The notes under the pieces were generated by a model. It ran no database searches. It was not told the DNA's origin and saw only the letters and a list, made by a program, of their open reading frames with translations. DNA of 64,000 bases, from positions 580,809 through 644,808 of the forward strand of contig NW_002060969.1 in the NCBI RefSeq assembly GCF_000150275.1, written 5' to 3'. A program made the translations under genes and the position numbers. Source of the DNA: Trichoplax adhaerens (taxonomy: Eukaryota; Animalia; Placozoa). How positions within the stretch are numbered: position 1 is the stretch's first letter; every line of letters begins with the position of its first letter. Shown here one piece after another: positions 21,093-61,246 of the stretch.

Positions 21093-21094
<2 letters not shown>

Positions 21095-21125
<31 letters not shown>
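21095..21125. repeat. (TA)n microsatellite
   Basis: Uninterrupted TA run. Confidence 0.9.
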
Positions 21126-21128
<3 letters not shown>

Positions 21129-22803: not shown

Positions 22804-25800
22804 CTGAGAGAGGAAGGATAATGCAAATTCTTGCTATTATTTTACATATAAACCAGTAAAAACATCGTATTAAAATTTTACTAGTTGTAAAGTATAAATA
22901 TGAATTGATCTGTTTAATACGAGTACTGTTGTGTATAACCTATACCGTATTATTTTAAAATAGTTTCAGTTGTATATCCACTAACGTATCGAAATTTACA
23001 TGGGTATCTAATATTTTTCTTTACTTACACGAAATCTAGCCGAAAGGTACCATAGCAAGGGCAAGTTCTGAAATTATTTTAAAAAATTGGTACATAATGT
23101 CAACATGGAATATCCAGTGGCTGTGATATGATCATATGAAATTAAATTAAAATATTCAGGATAAAATAGATATAACTATGAAATTCCTTATTTATCCCAG
23201 CTTCTCATTGAAACTTTATACACGTTAATAGAACTTGAAGAATAATTCTGTTTTTGGCAAAGATAAAAATATTAAGTTTATACTACATACTAAAGCATTT
23301 GAGGATACTTTCAACTACAACTCAACCAGAGAATACAGTGAGGCAAAAGTTAATTATTTAATGTATACTAATTATTAGAAGACTAATTTTTAACGTTATC
23401 ATAACCATCAATTTTTATTTCAATATTTACGTCTGCAACGTAAAATTCAAGGCGGTTGTCAACAGAGAGAACTAAGTAACTCAACAATCCTTAAAATTAA
23501 ATAGCCTAATAGGAATTGCATTTTAAATTATTTTATTTAGTAAGCCTTATGCCCCAATATGGCAAGGAACGAAACAATTATGTACGTATATACGTATATG
23601 ATTATATAAATAATACTGTATAATGAATTTTCCGAAATTAGAATATTTAATGATGACACTTAGTTGACAAGTACCCACTAGGCAATACTTAAAAATGTAA
23701 TGGTATCTTACATGATTATAAATCAGTTTACACTTACCGAATAATATTCACGCGAAAGGGGTATAGGGAATTCATTTGGCTACAATAAATTAAAAAATTA
23801 CTAATAGCAGGATGACAGTATTCATCAACTGTCGTCTGTAAAGTATTGTGACCCACTGCAAGGAATATTATCGAGTAGCATAATTCGTATTTTCATGTAG
23901 CCTAGTCTGTAAGTACCGTATGTGCACCAGCTAGCTAGATAATTGCCAAAGCATTCACAAGATAAAACTGATTTATTATGTTTTACGTTCACTTACCGTC
24001 AATAACGTAGTCTCGTAAGGTGAAGGTAGATTTGGTCTCTGTAACACATAGTTTGATATGCTTATTTTGCTTTCTTGCAGTTAATTAAACATTAACATTA
24101 TCATCTATTTTCATAGCAATAAGCTTTAAGAACTGTCACAATATTTATAGTGTTTATTTATAAATATTTCATTTTCTGAATTTAAACCAAATTGATATCG
24201 ATTAGCCATGATAAGCTGTAAGTGCTTGATAAAGAAATCACTACTTTATATTCACACCTTGTTATTATCTACAACGTAACTACGATGCCCATCAATTACC
24301 CCCGTACAATGTATTACTGTATATAAAGTGTAATACAGTACTTAAAGCAAGTCTTGTGGGAGTGCCGTATATTTGGCATTGCTTGCTATTGAGATCGTGT
24401 TGCACGAAATGTTAGTACCGCAAATGAATTAAAAGTGCGAACGATCCTCGCTAATATGCGCTGCTATTATTTTCAAGAAATGCTGTATTTAACCAGTAGA
24501 TCAGTGTAACATGTAATTTACTTACATTAAAGTATAAGGGTGACAATGCAGGAGATGGAAGAGCTGGAGATGAGTCATCTTGCTAATCGTAAATAGTAAT
24601 GAAAATAAAAATATATAATGTCCAGAATTGATAGCTAACACGCAGTAAAACGTCAATCCAGTTGCGATAAACTTACACGAAAGTATATGGGTACTTGTTG
24701 CGATGGTGGTGGTGGGGTATTATCTTGCTGTAATAGTTTACAATATAATCAGGAGAGGCACTACCTGCATAATTATACTAATTTATTCTAATAGCATAAG
24801 TAACTATTTTATACTGTATGTAGAGTACAGCGTTAGCACCTACTCTAAAGTAGATAGGTATTTCTTGTGAAGGCGATGGAGGTGGCGATGTCGGCTCTTG
24901 CTGTAATAAAGTATTTTAGATACAACTTATAAGATTGTAAATTTGTACGTACGATAATGTGACGAGTATGTCTTCCACATCGTACCTACCCGAAAGTAAA
25001 TAGGAGGAGGAGGATCAGTGGGATCTTGCTATCAGAATATGCATATTATTACGTTAAGTTAGATTCAAGTTTTAATGGAAATTATATCAGCTAGTTTATT
25101 GCGTCAGCATATATAGGATGCTACATAGGACTCTTAGCGTGTGCGCTTACACGAAAAGAAATCGTTAGCGGTTCTTACCACTATGAATCAAAAAGTAGCT
25201 TTAGCTATATAACGTAAGCTTATTCTGTAATTTTGATAGAATCCTAATATGTATAGTCCATAGTACTTACACGCAACTTGATTGGTTTTAAAGGTGGTAG
25301 TGGCCGATTTTGCTATTATAACATTAAGCGAAACGTTAACAGTGTCATTCAAAGTATAAGCCTTGATCGAAATAGTTAACATACAAACACTTGTGATAGA
25401 AATTTGTTGTAGGAATAAACACATAGAATAATTAAGCACAGCTATTAAATCTGCTATTAAGGTCAAAGGGCTACATTCAATTGGGATCTATCAGGTACTT
25501 ACATTTAGATAGACGGACAATATCCATAGCAACGGATCATCTCTCTAAGATATAATAATTATTTAATGTTATAGTATATTAGTGGTGATCGTTTTATTAG
25601 TACGTGCGTTTGGCAACGCGTTAAGAACATTGATACTAAATTACTAATACTATATTCGTATTAACGATATATAATGAATTCAAACATATCAATAAGCCTG
25701 CAGGTTTCAAAGATCTATGTCAGAGATTCTATTACCAAACAAAGATCATTAGAACACTGAACGCTATTATTATTACAGATTCTGATTATATAAAGCGTTC

Positions 25801-26817
25801 GAAATTGGTATAAAGATTCAAGTATCTACAGTAATTTTCACCGAATAGAGTTCTAAGTGAATACCTACACTGTATTAGCCATAACTTCGATTTTTTATTA
25901 TGGAGTTCATCATAGATTCTGTCACAGATTTTAAAGTAGAGTATCTATGGAATTTTTATTTTATTAAGTGTGCACTCACACGCATGAAGATGGAAGGGCT
26001 AAGCGAAGTCGAAATTTTTTTCTACAAAAAAAATAATTTTTAATAATGTATTTATCCATCAAGCATCTGCTAAGTATCGTTTAACATAAATAAATCTATA
26101 AAATTGAGCGGAAATCCGAATTCTTTACACTAAAATTTTCATATTGTTTATCAAAACTTACTTTTTTGTTCCTAGAAACTGGCGGCTTACTTCTCTAAAA
26201 TTAGTTTTAATATTAATGAAATATTATTAAAAATTTTGATAATGCATCTTATTAGATTTTGGTGAGAATTGTATAAACGTATCGTGATCATTTGAAGACT
26301 ACGAAACCTAATTAATAGGTACCACAAATTTTTCTTTTTAATTGTAATCTGAATATTTATTGTTAGTCCCGACATTGTTAGATGTGAAAACATCATCAGC
26401 GTACGTTAATATACAATGTTATCGGTTTCATTCTTAACCTTAAGCAACAATCTGCTTAAAAAACTGAATAAACAAGCCTTCAATTTCAACAGATTTTAAA
26501 ATGAATCAGTTGTCTCGTTCATTATAATTGTTTACATGGTCCCACTATGCACAATAATAAGCTATTAATTATTCTAGCAAATTTCTGATTCTATTGTAAC
26601 TACCTTTTAAATCGAAACTTTAATTGAGAATACTCACAACTAGGCTCTTTCCATTCAGCTTAGTCACTATTGGATGCAAATCTTTATTGTTTGAGCCTCC
26701 TTTTGTGATTGATGATGCCCTGTTTTCTTTAATTATTTTGGCATTATTGACATTATCGCAATAGGCAGTAGTCATGATGAATACCGCTGCGATTAATAAG
26801 ATTCTCCTTAATTTCAT
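22804..26817 (-). CDS. Micro-exon secreted prepropeptide (Q...PIYFR cassettes); 3' end unresolved
   Basis: Signal-peptide exon 26638-26817 (MKLRRILLIAAVFIMTTAYC...), then AG/GTRRG-flanked open phase-0 exons: 26162-26194 RSKPPVSRNKK; 25980-26021 KKISTSLSPSIFMR; 25503-25544 RDDPLLWILSVYLN; 25271-25312 QNRPLPPLKPIKLR; 24990-25028 QDPTDPPPPIYFR; 24844-24900 QEPTSPPPSPSQEIPIYFR; 24677-24727 QDNTPPPPSQQVPIYFR; 24526-24582 QDDSSPALPSPALSPLYFN; 23997-24038 RPNLPSPYETTLLT; 23738-23779 PNEFPIPLSREYYS; 23029-23067 NLPLLWYLSARFR; 22804-22833 QEFALSFLSQ. Confidence 0.8.
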
Positions 26818-29043
26818 TTTTTACTTTGTTACTATACCTATCATAGAAGAAGGAGCATTTGTTACTGCTGCAATTGAGTTAGTAATAACAGAGAAAGAAT
26901 ATCCAAGCAATATTTTAAGGTCGTTATATAAGATTACCAAATCTGATAGCGGTTAGGATAAAGTGATCATAATACAGACTTTAAATCATCAGGCATGTTA
27001 TTCCAAGCATATATTGTAGCATTTCTGAACTAATTGAATTTGAAAACGAATTTTGAACGCAGTCTGAGGCGTAACTTATATTGTACTCATACAGTGACGA
27101 TATACTCAACAAATGTTGAGTCAAGAAACTGACGAAGTTTTATTTCTAAATCGCTATCTATCGTGAATAATAAAATGGTTAAGCATAAAATAATCAACCT
27201 GTAACTTATAGTTTTACGGTAATTATGTCTATAAACACGCTTAAATCTAATATTACAGCGAAGCAATTTCAGAATCTACATTTCTTTATTCTAATAAACG
27301 ATCATATTTATAGTGTGTACTTCTAAGTACACGGTATAAAGTTACTGAACCTCTGACAGGTCCACGACAAATGGTAATACTATCTGTTAAATGAACACAT
27401 TATCGTAAACCGTCAGCAAAGCGACGGGAGTTTGCACTAGTATTTAACAATTTACACTGTGGAAATCTCTTAGACTCTAGCTAGATTATACCGTAGCATT
27501 ACACTTACATAGAAGTAGCATATTATTATGAATCATTCGTGTCTATAAGTAATTTCCTCCTGCTGTGCTCTTAACATTATAAAAGCTATCTTCTTTTGCC
27601 TATTTCATTAGTAGCTCTGGCAGTTACACCGTAAGCTTGCACGCTTTACCTATTCTACACCATTATAGTTGTTCGACTAGTCACATCGTTACTCGCATGA
27701 TAATCTTACACGACTATTCTCTTACACTAGCTCAATAAAGATTACTCTTCCGTTAACTATTCTATTGTACTTTATTGTGACTAATGCGAAACTCTCAACC
27801 TTCCGAAACATCGCAATATTGTTGCGGTACACTATTTCAAAGCCCTTGTTTCTATATTCTAACAAGCTACTATATAAAATTCGAACAAGTACAAACCTTA
27901 ACGAGTATTCAAAGTTTCCACTTCAAGGAAATTTGAAAAAGCGCCACGATTGCAATGATAAATTGTCGCCAAGATCGCACAGAGGGAATAATTTCGGTTA
28001 GAAAAGCAAAGCAAAGTTAACATATATATATACCTTCATTGTCCCTACAAACGATTCATAAATACGATAGATAATCTTTTAACGGAAGTGTTGATAATAC
28101 AACTTATAATTGATGATGTATATTATTTTAATGAGAGAAATATATTTACAGGATTCGCATACTTTAGCATTTCTGCATTTCAAGAACAAAGCGATGATAG
28201 TACTGCTATTTTAAATAATTAATTACGGTATGTAATCTAATAAATCAAGCCTTGCAAATTTGAAGACAGTAGCTAGCTTTTGATAAATATAATTATTATT
28301 ATTGAACTAGGATTTTACATACAATTTAAATTTCTTAGAATGAAGCAAATACCTTACGGATAATAGAATACCCAGATACCAGATGACTTTACTTGATTAC
28401 CTAAAATTTCAATACGGAAATACGAATTCTAAATTTAGTATCCAATTATTCCTGTATCGAAAGTATTTTCTAATACTACAGTAATAAATGTGATGCTAAA
28501 TTAGCGAACAACATGAATCGAAGTCCTTTTAAATCAGACTTACGGTACACATTATTTAGTAGATTAATTTATTTGTAATATTGTAGTATCATCCGATAAA
28601 GCTCCTATCAATTATAAATTTCAATTTATAGAAGACAAGCATCCTTCTTGATAAACAGTTTACCAAAGATTAGATGGTCGTTACATTATTATTCAACACA
28701 TATTGGTATTGGAGTATTTCATTCAAATATCAGCGTACCGCTAAATTCAGTTGAATGAGGCAACGCTAATCACTAATGTCTATAAATAGCACCTACAGCA
28801 TCTTGCATTAAGATCATTATTGACGCTAATTGATATACGTGTATAATAAGACGCTAGGGTATTTGCAAATGTTATAATGTTTCCCAAACATTATATCTAA
28901 ACAAAGTAACACCAAACTTCTCATCCATTAGAAAAACGTTTATAACCTACACTGTGCGTTAGCGACGCCTCTACGTCATACCCGGTGCGATACCGTAGTA
29001 TATTATATGTACATGCATACTGTGTTCTGATCCATAGTAAAAC

Positions 29044-29495
29044 CGCTAAATTAATTATTACAGTATGGGCATGCAAGGCGGTATTAACAGTATGAAAAAA
29101 GGTTAAATGCAGTAAAACGCTAAATGTGTGCTTTCGAAACGAAGTGCAGATCATAATCATACAGTATTAAATATAAAAAGAGAGTGATATACTGTATAAC
29201 GCCAAATATGGGTATGCGAATCTCAAAGTATTAATTAAAGGCGCACTGTAATGTGCTTTCTGTACCGTATACCAGCTAAATTATTATAATTATGCAGGAT
29301 TAATGATATGATAAAAAGTTATATGCAGTAAAACGCCAAATGCATGCGTTCGAAACAATGTGTTTATTATAACCATACGGTATTAAGTATAAAAAGAGAT
29401 TGATATACTGTTTAACGCCAATACGGGCGTGCGAATCTCGAAATTGTTAATTAAAGACACACTGACGCACTGTATAGTACTGTACTTTCTGTAGA
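29044..29495. repeat. Diverged tandem duplication, 2 x ~225 bp
   Basis: Both copies share GCTAAATTA...ATGCAGTAAAACGCYAAATG...TTCGAAAC...CATACRGTATTAA...TATAAAAAGAGA...TGATATACTGT...TGCGAATCTC...TTAATTAAAG. Confidence 0.85.
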
Positions 29496-31484
29496 TCCGG
29501 AGTGTGTGTGTAGGTAAAGACGTGGGTATACTTCAAAGTGTGTATACAGATACTCCACCGTACAATCCGTCGGACAAAGAGTATAAAAGTCGAAAGTTTT
29601 TAAAGGTGCGTAGTATGGGTTAGTGATGGATAAATAATTAATCTGCAAGTGATATTTATCATATTACAGTCATTGTTATTGTGCTAATAGCTTATCATAA
29701 TCTAATATACGACATAAGCTATTGCTTAAAATATACATGAAATATTTACTAACAACGGTAACCAGCTGCTCTATTTTAATCCATTTGTGAATGAATTTGC
29801 TTAAAACTGTAAGGCAATAATATCTTTAGCAAATCAAATATCTTACATACATAAATAATATGATATTAATATAGGAAATGATTGATTTAGGAATAATTAA
29901 ATAACGATATTGATACTATTGACCATATTTAGTAAATATTTTGGTAAGATAGCTTAATGTTAATGTTTTGATCAATCTATCGGTGCTAAATTATTGAAGG
30001 TATCGTTCTACCTTGCCTTGAGTATCATTTGGCAACTCACATTTTCCGCTGAAATGCGAGATGTTGTCCAATACTTGGAAAGTGTATTTATGACCGGAAA
30101 TTGCATAATTAATTGTATACAATAATTATATTTTTATGCTTCTATCTAAACATTGATCTTACAATAATTATTTCCTACTTTGAGATACTCCAATTTATAA
30201 TTAATGCTTACTAGTCTCATCAAAAGATATTCAATTGTCCTTGTATTCTCACTACTTACGATTATTTTTAGCTAAATAGATCTATTTTTGTTAGTTCCGC
30301 AAAGTAAATTAGGAGACATATTCTAAATGAAAACAGCATAATATCAATGTAATAGTTTCTTTGGAAAACACGTGTAGAATAAATTTTGAAGGTAATTGCA
30401 GAAGTGATGCTTCCTATTTGGTATCTATGAAATACTACTGCCTTAAACTACATTATCAAATAAATAGTGATATAGTATCATATTTTGGGTAAATTTAAAG
30501 TTCTCTCGAAGCTAGTTCTAATTCTATAACAACCAGGAAAAATTTTTATTCTATAACTTGCAGCTATATAAGATTTCTTCAAAGAAATGATAACATCAGT
30601 ACTTATCTAAAATATTATAGACACGATGCTCTGTAATAATGCGCAGTGTACAGAATTATTGGTGTATATTAAATGTGAACTAAAAGTAACCTTAATTAAC
30701 ATTTGTAAATAAAAGGTAGTAGCACTATAGTGTGTCTAAGATAAACTCAGCAATTAATCGATAAACTTGAGTGCATTTGATTACTAGCAATAATCATAGA
30801 AGTCTTTAATGAAAGGTACTGTAGCCAATATCAATAGTCATTTTAGCAATATGAACTCAATTTTAAATTATGATAGGAAGCGGGTCCCTTCACTAAGTTT
30901 ACACTTTTTATTAATATTTATCGGCATTTGCTAATCGTTCAAGTAATATTAGAGCGGTCCTACAGGTGAAGATTATCCCTAGAAATTTTAGTTAACACCT
31001 TGTAATTTACGATACGATATGCTAATTAATGAGTGATTTGAACAACTAAATGATTGATTTAAAGTCAATGCGAAATCGGCTAGTTGGAAATTAAAACTAT
31101 TATACGACGAATATATTCTTGTGTAATATCCTTTTTGCTAAAGTATCTTCAAAAATAATAAAAAAAGAACTACAGTTTCTTGTAAACTTCGCTTTGTTAC
31201 ACAAATTAGGTTCGTCTTATAATTACCAAAAATTATCTAGCTGCAATCGGACTATCATCAGTCAATCAAATAATATTAATGAGATTTTATGGGTATCACG
31301 CTGTTAGCAGTTTCTGACTGAAGAATCATGATCTCGGTACCGGTACCTAGACGAGCATAGACAAACTGAGCCAACCTAGACTCTATTAACTTAAAATTGC
31401 ACCATATTCCGTGGAATTTCTACAAATTTTACCAGTCTAAGTTATTACGCGAAAATTCATCAATTATGTGTAATGTTACAAAAT

Positions 31485-31684
31485 NNNNNNNNNNNNNNNN
31501 NNNNNNNNNNNNNNNNNNNNNNNNNNNNNNNNNNNNNNNNNNNNNNNNNNNNNNNNNNNNNNNNNNNNNNNNNNNNNNNNNNNNNNNNNNNNNNNNNNNN
31601 NNNNNNNNNNNNNNNNNNNNNNNNNNNNNNNNNNNNNNNNNNNNNNNNNNNNNNNNNNNNNNNNNNNNNNNNNNNNNNNNNNNN
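31485..31684. other. Assembly gap (200 N)
   Basis: Run of exactly 200 N, a round placeholder length typical of a scaffolding join. Confidence 0.99.
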
Positions 31685-35585: not shown

Positions 35586-37388
35586 CTACTTTCCTTCATA
35601 AATTATTGGAGGGGGCTGTTTATATTCCCTTTTTCTATTTATCAAACGCAATTCATCTTTTAAAGCTGATTTTGCAGAGCGATCTTGATCTCCAAACCTT
35701 GGTAATCCAAGAAATAATTTTTTCTTCTGATCATAGCTTGTCGACATATCTTTAGTAAATCTTTCGCTGCTACGCCTTTTTAACATGGCCATTGGTATTT
35801 CGTTACCGGATTCCAAATATACTGTTGGGACGTCAACAAACCCACCACTTGCTAATCCAGTTGAGTCCAAGTTCCAAATTGGTAGATTATATTTTCCAAA
35901 AGCCTTACTATCAGGTGTACTTTGGGCGAAAGAAAGTTGATAATCAAGACTTGAGGGTTCTGTCATGCTTGTTAGATAAGCTATATCTTCTGGCATCGTG
36001 TACATTTCAGGCCCATAATTGTATAATTGCCTAGCTAACAGATTGTCCCTAGGGACAATAGTTTGCTTTGTCCCTGTTAGAAATTAATTATTCATCACTT
36101 TAACGAAGCGATATATCAGGTTTCTTTTAAAATTGAGTACAGTATACGCTGGACAATTCAAAACTAACAAAAATTATAAACAATAACAAGAAATACTTAC
36201 AAGCATCCCTTTTGTGCAAATTGATACTAGGTAGCCCATACAGCTTAGGTTCGTTATCTCTGTTGCTAAATGTAAGAGTAGGCATTCGAAATTCCATGCG
36301 TTTACTATCTCTCTTACCAAACATAATGGGGGGTATATTTTGTCGGATACTTTCACTATTTCTCTTACCAAACGTAATGGAGGGTATACCTTGTTGGATA
36401 CTTTTACCATTTCTCTTACCGAACGTAATAGAGGGTATACCTTGTTGGATGCTTTCACTATTTCTCTTACCAAACGTAATAGAGGGTATACCTTGTTGGG
36501 TACTTGCACTATTTCTCTTGCCAAACGTAATAGAGGGTATACCTTGTTGGGTGCTTTCACTATTTCTCTTACCAAACGTAATAGAGGGTATACCTTGTTG
36601 GGTGCTTTCACTATTTCTCTTACCAAACATAATAGATGGCATTCCTTGTTGGATGCTTTCACTATTTCTTCTATCAAGGACATCAGAATTGTGAGATTGT
36701 CTGCTTACTTTGATATCTGAAATCAAGAAAGAAATCGTAAATTAAATTTTTATTGCTTAACTAGTCTACATTATGAATATATGCATTCGGCAATGATTGC
36801 ACCCTTTCATGAATGCAGTGTAAATACAATAGTAACTGTAAGCTTCCTCTGCTACTCGACATCATAGTTATCTTATATCATAGAATGAATTTATGTATTC
36901 AAAATTTTCATTTACTCAAGTCTAGAATGTAAATATGCAAATTCTGGTAATAATAGTATCGTTTTAGTAGTACACTGTAGAACCGAAAAGATCACTTATT
37001 ACCTTCTAAATTTCTCCTACCAAAGCCTAGAGGAATAAATGTTGGTTGTTCACGCAAAGTGTGTCTCTTAGCTGATGATATAAAACGAGCATTTCCTAAT
37101 AATTATGAAGTAATCTTTTAAGAGACTTGCTTTGCACGTTCGATATCAAAAAAGAGTAATCGATTTTATAACTTTTTAGAACCATAATTACTTCAATGAG
37201 TAACTAACTGTAGATAGAATAGTTTAGATCGAAAATTGTTTACTATTTAAGATTACTACGTTATGCTTTAATATATCATGATGCCAATTTATTCTAAACA
37301 GGTATTATTTTATTTTACCTGGCGTAGTAGCAACCACTACCGCGATCATGAGGATAGTGTAAGATAGGAAAATCGAATTCGTTGCCAT
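35586..37388 (-). CDS. SITFamide neuropeptide-type precursor, 4 exons, ~388 aa
   Basis: Exons 37319-37388 (signal peptide MATNSIFLSYTILMIAVVVATTP), 37003-37095, 36201-36716, 35586-36073, joined by phase-1 introns in frame; seven 17-aa units ending FGKR (five GIPSITFGKR) give amidation plus dibasic cleavage sites. Confidence 0.93.
36207..36666 (-). repeat. Coding tandem repeat, 51-bp unit x ~9 (7 conserved, 2 degenerate)
   Basis: Repeating CTATTTCTCTTACCAAACGTAATAGAGGGTATACCTTGTTGG on the + strand, encoding NSESTQQGIPSITFGKR on the minus strand. Confidence 0.95.
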
Positions 37389-43156: not shown

Positions 43157-44200
43157 TTAACGACCATATCTAGGATAAAGATACGGCGGTGGTTGATCTT
43201 CTCTTGCTTTTCTATCATAGCTGCTTTCTTTGATAGATCCATGTTTCGAAAAATAATCGGGATTTAAAATACTCAATAAATCGCTTCGAGTTTCTAAACC
43301 CTCTTCATCATACCTATCATATAAATCACCTCGTGCAAATTTTAATAGTTCACTTGATGGGTTTTTTAGAAGATGTTGATATGGCGTTTCATAGTGACGG
43401 GGATCAAATAGACCATCGGATTTTCTTGTTATGTCATCATTTCCTATAGAATACGTTATATCATATTAGTAAATATTTCAGAAATCATTTTCGTCCAGTT
43501 AGATCGAACTAATTACAATTCCGAGTTATAAAAGCGATTTCTAGAGAATCATGTGTTAGCACCATAAAATTTTGATTTAATCCACCAGAATCAAGTATTG
43601 GTGTTGATAAATACAAGTACTAATCGTATATTGTATAGTTAACTGGATTAGTATGTATATAAATAAATTAAAAATAGAACTCATCTATTTTATTATTAGC
43701 TATTCAATTATATGCAGAAATTACGTTCTTATTCGTTAGATAGTACTGAATTTACACTATGAAATTTGTAGCTAATTCATAGGTTTACCCGGAAATTACG
43801 ATTTCTAAAATTTATATCCTTGTTCTTGTAATATGTTCTCATGTGTTATGATATTTTATTGCCAAGCTACAAATTAATTTTACATTGGATACTAGCTTCT
43901 TCAAATCGAATCTTTGATTAAAGAAACGTACTACAGGTTAAAAAGATATTGATACACCAAGACTAACTTAATAAAAGAGCCTATAGTACTATTAATTACT
44001 AAAAAACTAGAGTAAATGCTAATAAAAAAACAGTTCGTAAATTGCTTAGTCTGAGCATATTTTTGCAGCTTGTGCTGTATTGAAACGCTATGATATTGAG
44101 ACTCACCCAACTTTCCAGTAAAACCTGTTAGGTCATCAATGCGTCTACAAGAGACAGAAGCGAATAAAACATAGGTGTAAATGAACAGCAAAAATTTCAT
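43157..44200 (-). CDS. Secreted prepropeptide with C-terminal QPPPYLYPRY-amide candidate, 2 exons, 126 aa
   Basis: Exon 44107-44200 MKFLLFIYTYVLFASVSCRRIDDLTGFTGKL (signal peptide, donor GTGAGT, phase 1); exon 43157-43443 is open in the matching phase: GNDDITRKSDGLFDPRHYETPY...SYDRKAREDQPPPYLYPRYGR*. Confidence 0.85.
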
Positions 44201-46598: not shown

Positions 46599-48243
<1,645 letters not shown>

Positions 48244-48667
48244 ATTTGCTGCTAGTACGTACGTGTACCCCTCGCTCGTCGCGTACAGTAAGTTATCGCA
48301 GCCTATCGCAGTTCGCTCATTACCGACTTTACAGTATTTTGCTATTTGCGGTAATGTACTGTACTGTACAGTACAGTACTGTACTATTTCCTCACAGTGT
48401 ACACTCACTGTACTGTACTGTACTGTATCCTAATATCCTATTACTGTAAACAGTGTACAGTATCATGGTTCCATTGACTCCCTTAAAATAAGCGTACGGT
48501 ACTGTACTTTGGTGCTTTTGTTGACATGCGTAAAAAATAGTATGGAGAACCTACAGTACAGTACAGTACAGTACAATAAATACACATACTGTACCGTACT
48601 CTTCAATACTGTACTGTAGTGTAAGCTTTTAAAAACTTTACAGGTTCTTATTTCGTGATTTCATGCA
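48244..48667. promoter_or_regulatory. Probable bidirectional promoter between HINT and HSPA14, rich in CAGTA/TACTG
   Basis: Head-to-head start codons separated by 424 bp; dense TACTG/CAGTA arrays at 48350-48620. Confidence 0.65.
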
Positions 48668-51600
48668 ATGACGGCGTTTGGTTTACATTTTGGAGGAACT
48701 AATTTGACATTGGCTGTTTGCAAGGTAAATTGCGTTATAGCAGTTCTAAAAGCTGATAAATATGGAACTGTCAGGATGCGTTGAGTAATGCTATTCATGT
48801 ATTCCAGATCATGTTGATTAACATGTTGAATGTAGTAAAATTGAGTAGGATTTGGTAAAACCTGCAAAGATGTACAGTAACATACACTATACGAGATGTA
48901 CTGTACTGTATGTTGTACAGCAAAAGATATACAGTCCAGTAATACTGTACTTTACGACCCTTAGTGTACGTAAGAGAATTCGCCACGTCGGAGAACTCTA
49001 CTCGCTCGTTATACTTCGCGTGTACCAACAGTACTTATACCTTTCACTAAATGGTATTTTACTAGGTGTACAGTAAGTTATGTATAATTATAATACAAGC
49101 ATATTAATATATTACAAGTGCTATCATTTTATTAATCAAATCAAGAATAAAGTTAGTATTTTCAGTTTATCTTTGCTCAACGAATATAACGTTGTTACAG
49201 TACGAGTTTAATGGCGTGCTGCCTTTGGCAGAATATGCAGACAGTATATGTTATATGGTACTCTACTGTACAGTACACTACAGTAACGGACAGTAGAATG
49301 CTTTACGCTATGCGTATTTTACTGTTTTAACTTTGCCTATCTACTGTAGCGGCATTTGATACGTGAATAATATACGACGTATAATTAATAAATTACTAGT
49401 AGGCCCATGCTCGTTATACTTCGCGTACTGGCACTGTATAGTTTGAATGTGTATATGTTATGCGCTTACACTTTCTATTTTACATCATATACATTAAAGT
49501 TACATGAGTATATAATCGGATCAAATTGATCCAAATAACATCATGACCCTATCTTATGAAGTTTTCCTAGCCTAGAAATAATAGTATTGCTTTGTAACCT
49601 TTTAGGATGGTCAAACGGAAATTTTAGCAAATAATGATGGCCATCGATCAACGCCTGCTGTGATCGCTTGTAAAGGAGCTCACTATGTATGAATATTCGA
49701 TCTGTGAATAGGCTCGCAATATTTTTACGTTATTTCTTATTCGTATAATGTAATCCAGCTGCACTAAATCATCCATCTCTGCTGTTAAGAAACCTGATTG
49801 ATAGTTTCTGGTTTACCATAGAAATCAGTAAAACGACAACTATGTACCTACATTACAATTACAAGGAGCATTAATCAAGCCGTCTTATTTATTTAATAGC
49901 AAGTCGTATATAGTACACTTTTAACACAATTATGCTATCTGCTACTTAGCGCTTATTGGGCAATTGCATAATATGTGCTAGAATCAGCTTTGGCTCCTGA
50001 ATTGTAACAGTTCAGCCTTTTGGCTAATATTATACTGTACTTCTGGTGGGTATATAAACGTGTTGAATATTAACTAGGTTTGATACTAGTACAATCACTA
50101 ATTTTGGATTGTTAATAGATGAAGTATTACTTTACCATATGGTAGTTAACCTGGAAAGTTGATTAAAGCGTTTTGGCAAATGCATCACGCAACGGTGTTA
50201 GAAGTAACTTCGTTAAATTTTTAGTAAATGTAATTATAAATTATTCGAACTGCAGATTTTGTATACTGCTAGCAGCTGTGCTGATTAGTGAGTGAAGTGT
50301 TATGTATTTATTTGATTATCAAGTTGAGCTACCCTAGAACACATAGCAAATTATTCTAAGATTTATTACGTCAGGTCGTGTTTACGCATTTTTTTGGTTG
50401 TAATCGTAGGCTGTTGGAATCAATTCTGCGTTAAATTACAGACCTGGTGAAGATATAATAGTAGAAAATATTCGTTCTATTATCGGCCTAAAGTATGCGA
50501 ATGCAATAAACTATTATTTTATTGTAATGCGATATGTGATTTCTAGAATTTTTAGATATTTATATTTATAGTAAAGGTAACTTCTATATCTGTTCGTACC
50601 TAAAAAATTTTTGAGGTCTCGCAAGTTATTACCGATGTACGATAGAATTTATATAATACTTAAATGTTTGGTGTTTACTATATTGATGAAGATCGGAGGA
50701 TTTCAAAGTACAAGAATTCGTTCGTAAATCCAAATGTAAGGTAACGTGACAGTTAGAGCGGGTATACGCGTGGTATTAATTACGGCGACAATGGTGAAAT
50801 ATATTACACCTTCTTAGCTGACACTTTCAATGAAATATTTTTTCTAGTAGTTAAAGAATCAGTTATTAGATAGCTCTAGAATTAAAATTAAATCACCGTA
50901 TACCATAAATTGACTGTAGATAGAATCCGATGAGGAAGATATTATTTTCAAATTTAAAGAAAATCTGAAAGATACTTTTACGTTGTCTCGGCTTGTAGTA
51001 CTTCTGCTACAGAAAATGAAAGGTATATGTCGATAAACTGTATTTATCTTAAATTGTAGTAGCTATCAAAGGGTTAAGTAACCTAGGATCTAACAAAATA
51101 TAACTATACTTAGCTTTGAAACATAACCATTAACTTTGATCAGTGTATTCGTACTAATTAGAAATTACGCAAACTTACACCCAAGAAGAACCTATCCGGG
51201 TCGTTTTAGCTGTACCCGTCTATTATAAGGACGTGCAAATACTGGCACTGAAGTAACTTACGTACTTGTGGACTTACTAGTTACTTCAAATTGCATATCA
51301 CTGTCAGATTGACTAAAAGCTAAGTGATTCGCCAATTCCTAACTATTATATCCTTCTAGGGCCGCCGCTGAAGAAGTTGGATTTAACGTTCTTCGATTTG
51401 TGAAAGAACCCTGCGCTGCTGCGTTAGCGTACCAGATAGGACAGAATGACATATACGAAAATGGGTAGGTTATTCTTCATTCATAATGCAATCCATTATT
51501 TTGTAGTACTCTTTCAGATACCTTTTCATAACTTTATCTATACAATTTTATTTTATGCAATTTCTGTGTAATTTTAGATACTACCTAATATTTCGTCTGG

Positions 51601-53365
51601 GGGGTAAGAGCACAGATGTAACTATATTGAGGGTAGACGGAGGATTATATGAGATATTAGCTTACAAAAACGAGCAAAACTTTGGTGGAGAAGATTTTAG
51701 TTGCACTATTAGTGAATGTTTAATAAAGGAATTTGAAAAGTATGGGCTAGTTTCAAAGTAGTTATATAATTATAATTTTTTTTACCTTGTTGGATTCATT
51801 TATATTTTCATTTATTACAATAAATTTTGTTTAGAAAATGGAATGTACAGATCCCAAGGGACAGTCAACGCGCTCTCAATAAATTCTTAAAAGCTGCTGA
51901 GCAATGCAAACAAATCCTATCGTTATCTCCTACTGCAACTCATTTCATTGAATCCGCGTATGATGGTATCGATTACCAGTGTAGTATTAGTCGAACTAAA
52001 TTTGAGATGCTATGCAGTAAACTATTGGAAAAGTGCCTTAACTTAATCGATAATACCTTGAATGATACATCTTTGACCAAGACTGATATTGCTAAGGTCG
52101 CAAAAAACGCTTGCGATTTATTACATTAAAGTAGCAGTCTATTAATATTATTATTTAACGAAAATTAATCATATACCGTTGTATAGTTTCAGATTTAATG
52201 TCGTGATAATTTAATGTAAGTCATTAAAGTTAATAATATTTATACATAGATTATTCTTAGCGGAGGATCATCACGTATTTTAAAACTCCAAGAAATAATT
52301 AAAGCCAGATTTGACATCCCAGTCTGTGTAGGTATAAATCCAGGAGAGGTCATTGCTATCGGTGCCGCTGCACAGGTTGGTTAGCTGAAATCTTGGAGAG
52401 TAATTTACGTAAAGAATTTATGTTTAGCTGCATTCGTGATTAGTCACTGATTATTCTTCCTACTCGTATGTTAATTATACAGGGAGGGCTTATTTCGAAA
52501 GAATCTTCCGACTGCAGTGAGAAGACTTTATCAGTCCTTTGCTCTCCGTGTGGTATTTGTGTCTCGGTAAATATCTCTAGTCATTTCATAGCATAGAATA
52601 GGCGATAAATAATAGAATCTTAGTTAAAATAGAATAAATATAAAGTTTGTTACGGTATTAGGACAGAGAAAGTGATCTTATAGTGGACGACGTGCAGGTT
52701 ATTGTTCCCAACCTTTGTCCTCTTCCTTTCCGAAAGAGAATTCCGCTGCGAGAAGTCTGTGTCGAGAATCCTCTAGTTTGTATATATGTACATCAATTGC
52801 TTCGATCCGACAAAGAGTACGAAATTCGACCAATAGCAAAGGTATTCGCTACAGTTGGGTTTCTTACAATCTATGTAATCTTTATATGATAAGACAATTT
52901 CTGAATCTCGGGTTTTCCGCCGTAGTTGGTATTAACCGATTTATCAAAAGACGATGACAACCGCTTTATAATTGATGTGGAATATAAACGGTATGACAAA
53001 CTATAAATATTCTACTCGTTCGATTGTATTCATGAAACACCCAGTTTTTTAGCTGATCTACTATTAAATAGTACGATTATGTAAAATGTGTATATAGTAC
53101 TTGTAAACTCAATATTATACCCTAGTCCTTTCTAGACAACCCTTAGATGATATATTTAAGACTATTTTTGTTCGTAAATTGTTCTATTAATTATCTGTAA
53201 TCGCACTTTATTTTCCTGAAAAGTTTCTAGTGATGATATCAGGGATTGATCATTGTTATTTACGATCACTGATATTATAGGGATGGAGAAATTAAAATAG
53301 AACTAATAGAGACCATTTCAAAACAAGCAACATCCTTAACTATCGGCACCGAGAAGATAGAGTGA
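48668..53365 (+). CDS. HSPA14: Hsp70 family member 14 (ribosome-associated complex subunit), multi-exon
   Basis: MTAFGLHFGGTNLTLAVCK|DGQTEILANNDGHRSTPAVIA, AAEEVGFNVLRFVKEPCAAALAYQIGQ, FRLGGKS, NFGGEDF, AEQCKQILS, ESAYDGIDYQCSISRTKFE, SGGSSRI; short C-terminus lacking EEVD. Confidence 0.88.
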
Positions 53366-56300
53366 AGCGCAAAGTCAGTAATAGTAGCCATAGAGAATAC
53401 ACGTTGTGATTGCATAATCGTATTTGCGTTATCTTTGTATTTGAACTTTAAATTAATAAACGTTCGTGAGCTAGACTTGTTACGGCTACATTTATGGTGT
53501 TGAACGCTATGAGATAACCAAATTTTTACATTTTCTTAATAAAATACGTTTCATTGTCATAATGAGATCTACTGCTCTCATAAAAAGCCTCGAAATGGTA
53601 GCTAAATCATCTTTCATTAATTATACGATATTAAGTTCTTATTCAAATGTAAATTTTGCTATTAGTTCGATAATTTTGTATTATCGTAGTACTGCAGTCA
53701 ACTGTACATCATATTCAATGAACGAACCATGGTTTGACACATGAAATATCGTCTACTGGTAAAAAAATACGTATATATGCCATAGCAATCATATTAAAAT
53801 TTTCTGTTGCTAAAAATAATTTGATTGGACTGTTTAAGATTATTCACGTAAAGTAATACGTATGCTATTTAGTTTTAATCTTAAACCAAAAAAATATCAG
53901 AAATGAACATTACTATAGCACATTATGGAGAATTACATATTTGTGTCGATTAGAAACAGAATATAAGAAATATAGAATTATGGCTAAAGTAAAGCTCATG
54001 TCGATGTTTCTTACGTATAATAGCACCAAATAGCGCTGCTTGTATGTTATCAGATTACCGTATAACCGTAAAGATGATTAATCGATTTAGCTATGAGATC
54101 AATATCAGTATAATATTCATATGAATATTGACAATTCGTAAGAAGAAATGAAATTTTAATGCTGCATACTGTATTGCAAAGAACTAACCGAGTTAATTAA
54201 ATGAAAAATCGCCAAATGGTGCTACAACTATTAGATCACTTAACTACATGTGTAAGTTTTATATCTTTAATTTTGAATAGATATCCGTTAAACTCGAGCC
54301 TGCAATGCTATTTAGCGAACTAAGCATATAGTACTAGTAAGCTACAGCATACACAATTTTTACCGAATGCTATGCTTTATTTTTTATTTTTTTAAACGAT
54401 TTTTAGCACTGTAACGTTTGAAAGGCGATTAGCAATTCTATCGAATTTATACAAAAACATGCCAGAACACCGCTTATATATTGCCCTTTAACATAGTTAT
54501 GGAATTATTTCCTGACAACCTGCTATGGTATTAGGATACAGTATACAGTATAATGAAGTACGTGCTGACTGGTATATAACTCAGACTAGTTGCCGGATGA
54601 CAGATCACTATTCATTCCTGAGCTACCTTTAGTAAGAATGAGAAAAGATTTAGTTAAATTTTCATGAGGCTCTGCGAAAGGCAGTTGGATGCCTTGGCAT
54701 ACTATAATTAGATAACTATTGTAATGGATGTATAACTCTGTATCTAGCTGTACATGTAATAACTTTAAAAATCTAATTAAGTTAGCAAGTCTTAAAGGTA
54801 AAATTATAATCACGATTTCAAGATTTTCATGTAATCATTATCTACTGCAGTTAACTGAGATTTAAAAAAGAAACAGAACTTATTTATTTGATTCCCAGTG
54901 ACTATACTCTAACCCAATTTTGGATCCTAACGTAGTGCGATAGTATTACAATGTAGTACTAACGCAAGAATTACTTTCTATAATTATTATTTTAAGATTT
55001 CCCTTGTCCTCCTATTTATTAGTCTGTAAAGAATAAAAAATATGCCGTAACTGAAGGAATTGATAAGGTCAATAAACTTGATAATTCGTACGTTTGGATT
55101 TTTCAATGAATAAATATTTAATCTATTTTTTTGTTACTAAAATAGTAATTACTAATAAGAAATTACAAGCTATCCGTTCTGTTATCTGCTGAAGAGAAGT
55201 TTGTAACCGTGTAGTCAAGGAAAAAGTAATGAATGATATAATGTCTTAATTCAGTATATGGGTTGGTGCTAAGGTAGTGATCTCCAAACAACTTCGTTAA
55301 ACCCGCTATTAAGTATATAGCAAATAGGAAAATTTATATTAACTAACAAAATGTAAGCCGCAACTTAAAATCATTAAAAGTTGCTAAATAAAAGCGAAAT
55401 GGTAAATACTAGGCTGATTGCTAATCCTTCAGTTATTTATGATTTTTAATCATCTCCCTATTAAGCGAGCGTTTTATCGTATATGATCATGTACGGTTAT
55501 AAAGTTTTATAATTTTAAACTTTTCCAATAATCCAACAAAATATAAAATTTCGTGGCCTCATTGTTTTTTTTAGGCAAGTATATACGAATATTTGTGTAC
55601 TATTTATGTACCTTATGACATTCAGTATTTTTAAGGCTAGTCGTTTCTTTACAAACTTGATGATCAATACTTACAATAATCTATTACGATTGATATCACG
55701 TCTTATTGTGACGATTTATATAAGCCTAACTAATTATATGTAATCATTAAAATAATATATGAGGGCTATTATTAATCCAATATTAAAGCATTTAACAAAG
55801 CTCGGGCATATTTTTCAGAAAGAAATATTGCACCAAACAAAGTGATGTTATTTAATTGCTGTAAATAAGTTGCTATAATGGCGTTGTAAGAGTGGTATTT
55901 CCGATTGATTAATCTTCTATTTCTAAAACAATAACGAAAGTAATTCCAGGTGTTTTTCTTCCCATCACTTTACAATATTAAGCCGAGTCATGTACTATAC
56001 AAATTGCTCATATGGGTGAATAATGTCATCCTAAACATGTTTTTGACGCGTTAAAAAAATATACTTTATGAATACTTATGATCAACTGGCATCAAGTAAA
56101 AAATACTCCTTAAATTTAAATCTCCTGTTTAGTTTTGATATACTGTAAATACAGAACGTACTGTAATGGAAATAAATAATTGCGGTATTAAATATTAGTA
56201 TCGATCGGATGAACTCTTTAGTGATGGTACCGTGCTATTTTATAAGAAGCTAACACAAACAATACTGGTAATCACTATAATAGTATGTAACGGTTTTATT

Positions 56301-56812
56301 TGCTCATTCTTGAAGTCTCATATTAAACATTTTTAATTAAGAAGTAAACTGTGGCTTTGATAAAGTAGCAAATGTATAATGGGTAGGCTAGAGTGGAAGG
56401 TAAAATATTATAATTTAGCCAATCGCATCACTGCTAAATAATTTAATAAGTAAGGAAATTACTTCAAGCTTTTAAATTTAAGTTAATTTGATCATCAATA
56501 TTTAACTAAGAAATAAATAAATAATAAAGTTTCATCATCGCGATTATGGCATTCCTTCGTATAGATTTTAGAAATAAGTGGAGCATATATTATTTTCTTA
56601 AGTTCATACAATGGTCTTTGGAGCTTAAATAATTTACTAATTAATCTTTTAGAACATACGATGTGTATAAATAGAACATACGATGTGTATAAATATTGAA
56701 GTTTTGGAGTAGTAACCTCATTACAAAATTGCATCACTAGTAAAACTGGTGGACAAATAGTGTTATATCAAATAATTTGTCTCAGTAAAATTATTACCAA
56801 AAATTACTATTC

Positions 56813-59800
56813 ATGGACCATAAGATAAAAATTTTAGCATTGATAGTTATTGCTATTGCTGGCCTATCTTCAGGAAAATCGATGGTAAGTCAATGTTGAT
56901 AAGAATAATAGCATTCTATTCATTTTTAATTTTAAAACTTCTTTACCGTACTTGACATATGTCTCAAAATTAATACGACAAGAACTTCGATTCCTTCTAA
57001 AATTCGCTTTATTACATGAATAAAACTAGCCACTACCATTATCTACGTTTGCAGCGCCAATCAACACCTTTTCTAAATATTAGGCACCTGTATAATCTTA
57101 CTGTCTAATCTGTATACATGATCTATTTTGGGTTACACACTATACTCTTTAATACATTATTCGTTCTCAATTATTTTGCCGAGTAGATTTTATGTTCAAA
57201 TACTGTATGGAGTAGATATATTGATCAAAACCATAATTAAGTTATTGATGGTACATTATCTTCATCATAATTATAATTGATCATTTCAGTTTACTACAAT
57301 ACAAGAAAACATATTTGTTATCCAGCGACATAGAATCGAATGTTTGAATATAATATCGAAGGTTATTGTCTTATACTGTATGATACTCTTGCGATAATTT
57401 TGAGATTAGCCATAAATAAGATAAATTTACTGCTGATGTTCGATAGAATAGAAGATAGTGTAAAAATCTTACTATTAAATGAAAGATTACGCTATATGTA
57501 TAATCTGGTACTTAGACAGCAATGCTTTAGTAGAATTTAAACAAAAATTGATAAGTTTAGACTCATAGTGAACACTTATAGCTACTTCTTTAAACTTTTC
57601 TTTTAAGTTTTTCCGGTAACATCTACCGCTTAAATCATTATATTTTAGCGAATCATTTAATATTGCTTTCAATAGATATTAGACTTTATGAATTTATACT
57701 AATTTCTTATTCACCTATGAGTGCTCTTGTAGTAAATCTCTAAAAATATCAGATTAGTTTTATTGATGACATAATCAACTCTAATTGACAAACATAAACT
57801 TGAAATTTTATTATGCATAAATTATTATATTTGGATGTTAAAGAGTTGTTTAACTAAAAAATTCTTTTTCTTTCACTCTTAAACATCGCTTCTAGGATAA
57901 AAATGGGCGAAATACTGTTTCTCTTTGGACAGTTAGTATACTCATATATGCACATATAGATAGATTGAAATGATCTAGTGTCGCAAATTACCTATGAGTA
58001 AATCGTATTATTTTCTTTTATTGTCTATCTTCCCCGGATTACCGATTACTTATGCATTATTTTAATGTTAAACTTGACACAGTCCGCAGCTAGAGATTCT
58101 AAACTAGCCGAAAGGGTAAGTAATTATGAATGTACCTTTTAATATAATATTAAATATTCCAACGAGTTTACCATTACATTTTTACATTTTAAGAGAATCA
58201 TTCAGTAATGATAATTCAACGTAATTAGTATGACCAACATCTATAGTATACTATAGCATGCAATACAGTATACGTACTGTACATATACATGTATTGGCAC
58301 TATTATCAACAAATCTTGAATGCGAGATGACAATTTTTCGTCATCACTTTTGTATTTTCTTTAATTATTTAGTTAACCGCTTAAGTTATAATTAAGTGCA
58401 GTAATCCAAAACTCACTGTGGAAACAAAAAAAGCTTTAATAACATTTAGAATAACAAGTTGTTCGGTTGTTTAAAGCAAACACATTTGTTAAATATAGAA
58501 CGATCAACGAAAAGGCTATATCTATTGGGAAACCAAACGCGATGTTAGTCAAATTTAAAATTATTATGTCCTTTTTACAGTATTTTCATCCCAATATATT
58601 ATAATTACGCAGTTGCTACATCATTCGTGCGCTTTCTTAATTTCAAATTCGAAATCCTATTCATTGGCTTGATTTAGAATACTCTAATAACATTATGTTC
58701 ATTTATTGGTTAACAGTCGTGCTTTAAAAATGTATTTGATATATATTTCTACTTATTTTAAAAGTTTTCATGCATATGTAGTATTTAATTCAATTAAATT
58801 GTAGTTTGCGCTAGTTTTTGAAATACTTAAAATATATTATAATTCAGTTAAATCATTACTGTTCATATATATTAATTCAATATTTAACTAATTTCTTATA
58901 TAATTATGCCTTCAAATTAGGAAAATCCTGAGGTGAGCTTCTTATCGTTATAAATTCTTGTTCACAAATTTTATGAACAGTTTATTAATTAATCGATTTT
59001 CTTAATTTATACCGCTATTTATTAATCTATTTTACCTAAATGATATCCAGAATTGGCCGTTACTTATGTGCCATGTATTACGATCATATCTGATATCTAC
59101 AGCTATAATTCAAACTTAATTGATCTTTGCATATGCCTGATATTCTATATAATTATTGAATGTTATAATTAGGAAACTGTATTATAAATGCTCATAATCT
59201 CACTTATTCGATAATCTTTACACATTTAATATCGCATCTTAAGTAATATGAAACGATTACTACTTAGAAGATTAATATAAATCGGAACAGTATATCATTA
59301 CCGTTTACAGATATTAATCATTCGACATTTAATCGGTTCTTACGTATAGCTATGCTACTAAATTAGGGTAATCCTACCGTGAGCGAGCTTTCTTAACATA
59401 GGAAATTATCTTGCCAATATCGCCATAACTAACAAAAATTTATATTTCTTAATTTATATATCATCACGTGTTAATCTATTTATACCTGAATGACATAATC
59501 CAGAGCTTGGCATTTTTTAAACGCAAGGTATTAAAATCAAATCTAATCTCTATATTACAAATCTAGGCTTACTTGATATCGATATATTAAATTTTAAATT
59601 TTTCTGTTTATGAATCTATATTCATTTTGGAAATACTGTAATTGTAAATGTAGCATTTTATTCCTGGTCATAGATGATCACTAATATTTCTAAGTCCTTA
59701 TATAATAACTTGTCTTACCTTCACTTACCTATAAATAATGGTTCGGAGTTTAATAAAACGAGGCATAAGTCACTTATTTCTAAAATACTTATACGTAAAT

Positions 59801-61246
59801 AAGACGTATATTGATAGTATTGATATCAATTACGTACGCGTATACAAGTGACTGACTATTTAATTAATTTCCTATGTATGGCTACACGATGAAATCAGGA
59901 CAATTTATTGGTTAGTAGACCATAACTATAAATTCATCATTTCTCTCTAAAGCATAGAATTGTTGCTATTTTCTAAATTTAAGGCTATATGATACTATTT
60001 AAATTCATTGGTGTCTTTTCCTCTAAATTTAAGGAGGATTATCCTTTTTTCGGAAATAAAAAACGCCAAGATTATCCTTTTTTTGGAAATAAAAAACGCC
60101 AAGATTATCCTTTTTTCGGAAGCAGAAAACGCCAGGTCAGCTTCTATGATTGTTATAATATATATTACAATAAACAGTAACGAAAATTGATATTTAGAAG
60201 TTGCCCATTATAAAGCTAAGCGTAGTAATTTCAACAGGCATAATTAACAATTTTTTAGAATCATTCTATCAATGCTTATCTGTATTCAAACAGTATATAT
60301 TATTACACATTGTATCCGTATTGTGAATCCAAAGCAAAGCAGCCATTATTAATGAAACACCATAATTTGATGGCCATATTGACAAATAATTGAGATTGCT
60401 TCTCTTTAATAGTGTGCAATCCTCTCCTGCAGTATTATAGGCATAGATTCATTTCCTACATTAAAATATCGTTCTTTATTTAATGATGCCGTTGACTGTA
60501 CTGTACGTTAAGCATACAAATGTAAATTATTTCCCCCAAAATTCCTATTACTTTACACACTTATTTTCATTAATATTATGGGCTGATTTCCATGTTCTTA
60601 CATGGAAAATGGTGAGCTATTAATATTATTTAATAAAGTGAAGATCAATTAAATGAATAATTGAACTTTATGCTCCACTTGTATAGAACTTAAGGGAAGA
60701 TAAAGTGGACAGTTCGGTAAGTTATTTGTAAATAATGGTTGCAAATTATGTAATGATACGCATCGTACAGTATTAATATAGGAATATAAAGTGTTACTGG
60801 TTAATATCGCTCCTTTGAAAGCAAAAGTTTAATCTATCTGAATCGATAAACATGGCTATTATAGCTTAAAGTTATGATTATAATTATTAAGAGATATAAT
60901 TATTTTAATTAGGATGATATGTGGGATTTCCTTGAGAGAGATGTAAGTATATCACTACCATTTAGTCTGCTAAGTTTATAAATTTAACCAAGGTGAGTAT
61001 ATAAAGTGGTTACCAATAGTTTTGCTGTATGACTGCATAAATTTATGAACATTGATTATGCTAATAATGATGAATACTCAGTCCAATTAAACAGTATAAC
61101 AGCAATCAGGTCAGCAATTGTATAGCTGTTGATTTCAATTAAAATGATTTACATCGTAGCACTATCTGTTTAATGTTTTAATGTAGATCATTCCTTTTTG
61201 GAAGAGGAACCGATTGGCCTCCATTAAGAGGTCAAGAATGAATTAA
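56813..61246 (+). CDS. ELP: Endomorphin-like peptide (YPFF) precursor, 11 phase-0 coding exons, ~151 aa
   Basis: Exons 56813-56884 MDHKIKILALIVIAIAGLSSGKSM; 57896-57931 DKNGRNTVSLWT; 58083-58115 SAARDSKLAER; 58499-58543 NDQRKGYIYWETKRD; 58921-58932 ENPE; 59504-59527 SLAFFKRK; 59899-59910 DNLL; 60034-60135 EDYPFFGNKKRQDYPFFGNKKRQDYPFFGSRKRQ; 60687-60716 NLREDKVDSS; 60913-60942 DDMWDFLERD; 61187-61246 IIPFWKRNRLASIKRSRMN*. Confidence 0.9.
58915..59600 (+). repeat. Diverged intragenic tandem duplication (~450-bp period) inside the YPFF precursor gene
   Basis: AATTAGG..AATCCT...GTGAGC, TTTCTTAATTTATA, TTAATCTATTT, ACCT.AATGA, ATCCAGA, GTATTA recur at about 58915 and about 59361. Confidence 0.75.

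Follow-up and report, generated by a model that had tools for sequence, protein, structure and literature searches.

Placozoans have no neurons, and their behaviour is controlled by about a dozen peptide-secreting cell types. The locus considered here, the terminal 64 kb of the 644,808-base scaffold C1388 of the Trichoplax adhaerens assembly (H1; NW_002060969.1, scaffold positions 580809-644808; 105.6 Mb in 1,414 pieces overall), holds four genes for known or putative secreted peptide precursors, named PIYFR, SITFamide, PRYamide and YPFF. This whole 64-kb stretch is called the window, and coordinates without a scaffold name are window positions. Two of the four have been published as single genes, the endomorphin-like precursor (TaELP, YPFF; KY675296) and the SITFamide precursor (TRIADDRAFT_61843); they are exactly the genes found here, and repeats and antigen agree. 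The linkage of these two genes about 19 kb apart, their position at a chromosome end and the micro-exon build of TaELP find no mention in the literature searched, and neither does the clustering of peptide genes. Micro-exon genes of schistosomes, whose products are secreted, have a signal-peptide exon and after it a long series of short symmetric exons, each divisible by three in length.

A comparable group elsewhere in the genome is formed by RWamide (C1410:2,292,323), WPPF (C1410:2,301,306) and FFNPamide (C1410:2,314,826-2,317,095), three known precursors that are likewise packed within 25 kb (C1410 2.292-2.317 Mb). The group is conserved in Trichoplax sp. H2 (TrispH2_001133, 001134 and 001136, with one further tag, 001135, among them), and to judge from orthogroup numbers WPPF and FFNPamide have probably stayed side by side in Hoilungia. 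As in the window, peak expression of neighbouring genes falls in different peptidergic cell types (alpha, lambda and gamma for RWamide, WPPF and FFNPamide, respectively; Najle 2023, PMC10580291), and one member, FFNPamide, is built from micro-exons. The group differs in lying inside an 8.6-Mb scaffold, in that all three genes are long known and in its lack of significant similarity to the window genes. In cnidarians, paralogous RFamide, GLWamide and PRXamide preprohormone genes have multiplied in some species (Koch and Grimmelikhuijzen 2022, PMC9545775). New peptide genes arise there through precursor duplication, with fast change in cassette number, much as would be the case in the window, but the cnidarian paralogues remain recognisable as one peptide family, whereas the window neighbours encode very different peptides with barely detectable homology.

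Along the window the order is PIYFR (-), SITFamide (-), PRYamide (-), HINT, HSP70-family, YPFF (+) and telomere, and the group ends 2.7 kb short of the (TTAGGG)n repeat (63930-64000, +, 11.8 copies) that makes up the scaffold's last bases. All four peptide genes named in a first-pass annotation, made from the sequence alone, are present, and all four lie in the last 43 kb of the scaffold. They probably make up a conserved block at the end of this Trichoplax chromosome, in which four secreted-peptide-precursor genes are each transcribed on their own. Three of them (SITFamide/PRFamide, PRYamide and YPFF) are documented precursors, with processed peptides detected by mass spectrometry for the first two. 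A hydrophobic N-terminus is encoded by the first exon in four of four genes, as judged by reading and without a predictor, and TrispH2_005562 and TrispH2_005563 are flagged SignalP-positive in Table S5 of Najle 2023. Glycine-containing cassettes flanked by basic residues occur in SITFamide (..SITFGKR, several), PRYamide (..PRYGR-stop) and YPFF (..YPFFGNKKR, three). A Pfam search of the four products and an Rfam search of 20000-64000 gave no match above threshold.

The proposed synteny with relatives is borne out: H2 is collinear with H1 over window positions 25755-54203, with the gene order kept. In Hoilungia, SITFamide (g03415) and PRYamide (g03416) are adjacent and follow g03414, a secreted-peptide gene found in that species only, although this adjacency, to the detriment of the case for a conserved block, is one of gene numbering in a table and not of coordinates. 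Only H1 and H2 sequences were present in the protein collections, so that synteny with the more distant Hoilungia and Cladtertia was taken from published gene numbers.

The SITFamide precursor gene (TRIADDRAFT_61843 / XP_002117813.1; 35586-37387, -), recognised by sequence reading and a protein match, encodes 388 residues in four exons separated by three phase-1 introns. Exon 1 carries the signal peptide and exon 2 reads ..QPTFIPLGFGRR. SITF/SIMF-Gly-Lys-Arg cassettes of the QQGIPSITFGKR type fill exon 3 (36201-36716), where they form a 51-nt repeat of 7.3 copies, and this exon matches residues 55-226 of the 388-residue protein at 100% identity. Exon 4, of 162 codons, encodes QKKKLFLGLPRF-Gly at 35691-35729 and has the C-terminal end KREYKQPPPIIYEGK-stop (QPPPIIYEGK-stop). 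Mass spectrometry found the peptide pQKKKLFLGLPRF-NH2 of this precursor in H2 and, for the Hoilungia H13 ortholog, a form one lysine longer, pQKKKKLFLGLPRF-NH2 (Najle 2023, PMC10580291, Table S5). The SITFamide peptide was used as NSESTQQGIPSITF-amide by Varoqueaux 2018; it has been seen with antibodies, and its cells are located in the upper epithelium. The PRFamide on exon 4 of the SITFamide gene may be the reason why SITFamide cells stain with anti-FMRFamide antibodies (Varoqueaux 2018). The cassette array varies in copy number, with two extra 51-nt units in H2 (36296-36669 as compared to H2 locus L002:17480-18181), a product of 422 residues in H2 versus 388 in H1 and an open reading frame (ORF) of 233 versus 199 codons. 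Two further candidate amidated peptides on this precursor, for which no report is known, are ..QPTFIPLGF-Gly-Arg-Arg in exon 2 (37000-37095) and the terminal QPPPIIYE-Gly-Lys-stop (35586-35630).

The PRYamide gene (43157-44200, -) consists of two exons separated by a phase-1 intron and encodes 126 residues. A search with exon 2 returned a single protein, TrispH2_005563 (126 residues), to which the gene model is 100% identical throughout. Mature pQPPPYLYPRY-NH2 is encoded at 43166-43195, and the precursor ends in ..PRYGR-stop. Because mass spectrometry of Trichoplax sp. H2 picked up the processed peptide ([D].QPPPYLYPRY.[G], pyroglutamated and amidated; Najle 2023, PMC10580291, Table S5), what had been put forward as a mere candidate is confirmed as a precursor; the Hoilungia ortholog g03416 yields QPPPFLYPRY-NH2 (same source). 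No H1 protein is found in the protein cluster of TrispH2_005563, and the gene seems to be missing from the original H1 annotation. No paralogue of exon 2 was found elsewhere in the genome.

The endomorphin-like precursor gene (56813-61246, +), recognised by the repeats of KY675296 and the published antigen, begins with a signal-peptide exon (56813-56884), followed by exons at 57896-57931, 58083-58115 and 58499-58543. A repeat exon at 60034-60135 has three E/Q-DYPFFG-N/S copies and encodes EDYPFFGNKKR-QDYPFFGNKKR-QDYPFFGSRKRQ. The cloned transcript KY675296, which makes YPFF a documented precursor, likewise has a signal peptide and three Q/EDYPFFGN/S repeats with basic residues on their flanks (Senatore 2017). 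The antigen of that study, ERNDQRKGYIYWETK, is split over 58083-58115 (..AER) and 58499-58543 (NDQRKGYIYWETKRD), which confirms one splice junction as well as the assembly of the gene from micro-exons. The antigen and splice sites together support four micro-exons (33-72 nt); exons within 58544-60033 and past 60135 are predicted, the last two (60913-60942 and 61187-61246) coming from an exon finder only. Cells of the ventral rim express TaELP. The YPFF peptide is present in the H2 table of Najle 2023 (Table S5), where no gene is assigned to it.

The fourth gene, PIYFR (21097-27763, -), was established from the spliced RNA contigs of three runs, two of them H2 metatranscriptomes and the third taken to be T. 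adhaerens, and encodes a secreted, proline-rich product of 255 residues. Its coding exons lie at 26638-26839, 26162-26194, 25980-26021, 25503-25544, 25271-25312, 24990-25028, 24844-24900, 24677-24727, 24526-24582, 23997-24038, 23738-23779, 23029-23067, 22804-22833, 22215-22262 and 21470-21505. The coding sequence runs from a start codon at 26817 to a stop at 21482-21484 (21482-26817). While the gene proved real, the first-pass annotation had let it begin at 22804; it runs about 1.3 kb (coding sequence) to 1.7 kb (transcript) further. All 14 joints in the RNA contigs read CT..AC on the plus strand, that is, GT..AG introns, and coincide exactly with the micro-exon borders predicted from the sequence. 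A 60-residue exon 1 with the signal peptide is followed by 13 exons of 30-57 nt and by the stop within 21470-21505. The internal coding exons (13/13) have lengths in multiples of three, and all coding introns are in phase 0. The product was translated exon by exon with the exons left unjoined, as in all exon searches. A 3' exon ends at 21338 (loose contig ends map to 21309-21338), and an alternative exon for the 5' untranslated region (UTR) lies at 27509-27763 (loose contig ends at 27509-27538). The transcripts differ in the 5' UTR only; alternative use of coding exons was not seen, with identical joints in the three runs, from contigs that drop rare variants. The exon build is that of the schistosome micro-exon genes, from which PIYFR differs in showing no alternative exon use in these contigs, in the lack of any sequence relationship and in having cassettes that resemble peptide units. 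A search of the rest of the genome for paralogues of exon 1 came back empty.

Whether this product is cut into peptides is the least secure part of the proposed block. Three exons in succession encode Q..PPPPIYFR, Q..IPIYFR and Q..VPIYFR, and further exons end in ..IFMR, ..IKLR, ..LYFN and ..ARFR. Five cassette boundaries read Arg|Gln and resemble those of placozoan peptides known from mass spectrometry, for example [D].QQKKPYNGWPPF.[R] (Najle 2023, Table S5). Two points tell against a precursor: the cassettes carry a single Arg and no Gly, so that cutting into peptides is putative and, judged from the sequence, unproven, and no PIYF-type peptide is among the entries in the covered part of Table S5. 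A live though minority possibility is accordingly that only three of the four genes encode signalling precursors and that PIYFR makes an uncut, secreted proline-rich protein with a structural, adhesive, mucus-associated or antimicrobial role. The absence of Gly-basic amidation sites, the presence of only two dibasic sites, cassettes that end in a single Arg, the missing PIYF peptide in the covered part of that table and the lack of a Pfam match would all fit such a protein. Schistosomes, too, have micro-exon genes whose secreted products are not hormones. What speaks for a peptide precursor instead is, first, the five Arg|Gln borders, as peptides that begin with pyroglutamate and end in an aromatic residue, with a basic residue next to it in the precursor, have been detected from the WPPF, LF and MFPF precursors (Najle 2023). 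In addition, the gene lies directly beside two proven precursors and has a PPP-I-x-Y/F core in common with them, and its fusion to an SSB gene in the H2 models may have left it poorly represented in the mass-spectrometry database.

That fusion concerns an H2 model of 350 residues with an SSB domain, which begins at PIYFR exon 1 (window 18800-26839; L004:20843-21905, where L004 is H2 contig NOWV01000082.1 around the 422-residue SITFamide-cluster member P0070, with 10-kb flanks). The model looks like PIYFR fused to a downstream mitochondrial SSB-like gene (ORF 18884-19084), and the RNA contigs have a stop at 21482-21484. Annotation is thus corrected in three places: the PIYFR-SSB fusion in H2, the TaELP peptide with no gene in the H2 table and the PRYamide gene with no H1 protein match. 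Two minor features of the PIYFR transcripts and gene were also seen. Contigs of two runs carry a second leader joined to the exon 1 acceptor (26837-26839, -), whose plus-strand reading is TAACGAGTATT(T)CAAAGTTTCCACTT. Neither the window nor the H2 loci, which extend to window position 54203, contain this leader; a distant exon, chimerism of the contigs or trans-splicing might account for it. An exon-like stretch, QAMPNIRHSHKTCF, preceded by AG, lies at 24343-24386 (-) between two used exons and is in no RNA contig.

To place the block in the genome, the peptides of Varoqueaux et al. were located by back-translated patterns; the pattern for LF had no match, and its cassettes were found by a scripted scan of the C1414 locus. 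For 12 known precursors, a simulation of uniform placement, a null that weakens the case in taking no account of variation in gene density, gave an expected 0.037 pairs within 30 kb, as compared to four seen (P about 5e-6). Likewise, 34 curated precursors of Table S5 (Najle 2023) form 10 H2 locus-tag pairs no more than two tags apart, with 0.18 expected (P<1e-5). The clustering that had been suggested for the window is therefore far above chance. It is also a property of the whole genome and not special to the end of C1388, with at least four such groups. Besides the window and the RWamide group, two H2 tag pairs were confirmed in H1 coordinates. One joins LFNE (C1414:238.3-238.5 kb) and LF (C1414:252.5-254.5 kb), which are 14 kb apart and lie within 16 kb. 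The other joins PWN (C1403:666.8-668.2 kb) and the gene for the ENEEQNEKQN peptide (C1403:654.1 kb), 13 kb apart. A link between the clustering and the telomere is not supported: among the four groups located only that of C1388 is at a scaffold end, and the other three are internal, 0.24-2.3 Mb into scaffolds of 1.9-13.3 Mb.

PIYFR, SITFamide and PRYamide follow one another on the minus strand, uninterrupted by any other gene call in the H2 annotation. A six-frame translation of the 64-kb window contains seven PPP tripeptides, 7/7 of them in these three genes. The pattern PPP-(I/Y)-(I/L/Y)-(Y/F), which was defined post hoc, occurs once in each of the three, with 0.01 expected in shuffles. The SITFamide and PRYamide precursors both terminate in a QPPPxxY peptide followed by G-K/R-stop, and BLASTP of SITFamide exon 4 against PRYamide exon 2 aligned NRKREYKQPPPIIY with DRKAREDQPPPYLY (7/14 identities, E=0.014). 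The PPP motif and the match between the terminal peptides are, as far as these sequences go, suggestive of common descent. No similarity was found between YPFF and PIYFR, SITFamide or PRYamide. The local duplication invoked by the first-pass annotation is thus supported only in part, by a motif common to the three minus-strand genes, and the similarity does not extend to YPFF.

In our reading, one ancestral gene probably gave rise to the three by tandem duplication. The cassettes would then have diverged fast, leaving the PPP-(I/Y)-x-(Y/F) core and, in SITFamide and PRYamide, the terminal QPPPxxY...G-K/R-stop. Within genes, cassettes would be gained by repeat slippage, as in SITFamide with its two more copies in H2 than in H1, or by exon duplication, as in PIYFR and, elsewhere, FFNPamide. 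Each gene would retain its own regulation, in keeping with H2 neighbours that peak in different peptidergic cell types. Chance, or a very ancient kinship, may be why YPFF lies next to them, and the position on the telomere side would be incidental.

Several points weigh against this history. Similarity among the four genes is confined to very short proline-rich motifs, with E=0.014 for the best-scoring pair given above and a regular expression defined after the fact. Peptides that start with Gln, are rich in proline and end in an aromatic residue belong to a general placozoan style, to judge from those reported in Najle 2023, and convergence is possible. YPFF, moreover, is on the opposite strand and behind two housekeeping genes.

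It is conceivable, if unlikely, that the genes are unrelated by descent and have been kept together by a shared chromatin or regulatory environment under selection, or lie in regions that tolerate new genes. Pairwise similarity near noise is what such an origin predicts, and clusters elsewhere also join very unlike peptides (RWamide, WPPF and FFNPamide). A shared regulatory domain would further fit Hoilungia (H13), in which SITFamide and PRYamide both peak in cell type zeta (Najle 2023, PMC10580291). In H2, however, SITFamide peaks in peptidergic_omicron and PRYamide in peptidergic_zeta (same source), and SITFamide cells are in the upper epithelium whereas TaELP cells are ventral. Because neighbours peak in different H2 cell types and the TaELP and SITFamide cells lie on opposite sides, the array is not a simple co-expression domain. 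The neighbours LFNE and LF, in addition, plainly have an LF motif in common, and within the window the PPP core is limited to three adjacent genes, both of which speak against this alternative.

Extended to the genome, tandem duplication would mean that placozoan secreted-peptide genes stand in old, conserved tandem arrays, whose members have become nearly unrecognisable and are expressed in different peptidergic cell types, and that duplication drove the diversity of both peptides and cell types. PIYFR would be a new member, its one cassette per exon showing how cassettes multiply. We hold this broader proposal only tentatively, as possible but rather doubtful. Should precursor genes indeed stand in conserved tandem groups, their history could be recovered from position once sequence similarity is gone, and the cell-type switching of neighbouring genes would be open to study at defined, compact loci. 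Such groups would show how the signalling peptides of a nerveless animal multiply.

The grouping is almost certainly not an artefact of assembly, whether a mis-join at the 200-N gap (31485-31684) that separates PIYFR from the other three peptide genes or a collapsed or chimeric scaffold end, as an independently assembled H2 contig is collinear over 25755-47385, gap included, at 98.8-99.5% identity, a second H2 locus carries the collinearity on to about 54203, and the H2 contig, as inferred from its length, ends where the H1 scaffold does. The gap, the only one in the window, is intergenic between PIYFR and SITFamide, and the suspicion of a mis-join there had been raised along with the cluster itself. 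BLASTN aligned L004:10822-15804 with window 36669-31687 and L004:16175-21905 with window 31484-25755; both blocks are 98.8-99.5% identical, with order and orientation kept. In place of the Ns, H2 has 370 bp of AT-rich sequence (L004:15805-16174) in which no gene was seen on inspection by eye, with no ORF scan made. The join across the gap is therefore correct, because the H2 contig runs collinearly through it. The gap being intergenic, nothing coding crosses it and the reading frame across it is not an issue.

Only two genes interrupt the group, as had been noted at the outset: in the interval between PRYamide and YPFF the H2 annotation calls just a HIT-domain gene and a 510-residue HSP70 gene. 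The HIT-domain (HINT-like) housekeeping gene encodes 144 residues (PF01230 and PF11969; approximately 46929-48243, -), and the HSP70-family, HSPA14-like gene encodes 510 residues (PF00012; approximately 48706-53413, +). Both positions are transferred from the H2 annotation; the two genes are head to head, and an HSP70-like ORF lies at 51827-52129. Flanks of 6-9 kb, described in the first pass as apparently empty and as possible carriers of cell-type enhancers, are smaller than that, since the PIYFR 5' UTR exon lies within them at 27509-27763.

Among the remaining precursors placed in the genome, MFPF lies at C1410:7.68 Mb, YYamide at C1410:3.63 Mb and SIFGamide at C1401:0.70 Mb. A kinship of the window genes with the RWamide group, considered from the likeness of QPPRWa to QPPPYLYPRYa and of FFGNKK to YPFFGNKK, was set aside as speculative (BLASTP E=0.3 and 7.2). 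FFNPamide itself (C1410:2314800-2317150) appears to consist of some 16 micro-exons, each 30 nt long, that recur with a 132-nt period, encode one D-D/G-Q-F-F-N-P-G-K-R unit apiece and are bounded by phase-1 introns. At C1414:252500-254500, the LF cassettes DSQGYALFRK, DSQGYPLFRK and GHPLF stand in short, stop-bounded open stretches, and the LF gene near LFNE thus looks micro-exonic as well. The LFNE cassettes of C1414:238387-238482 recur in identical form on a 6-kb contig (C1024:5497-5658), which is probably an unmerged haplotype.

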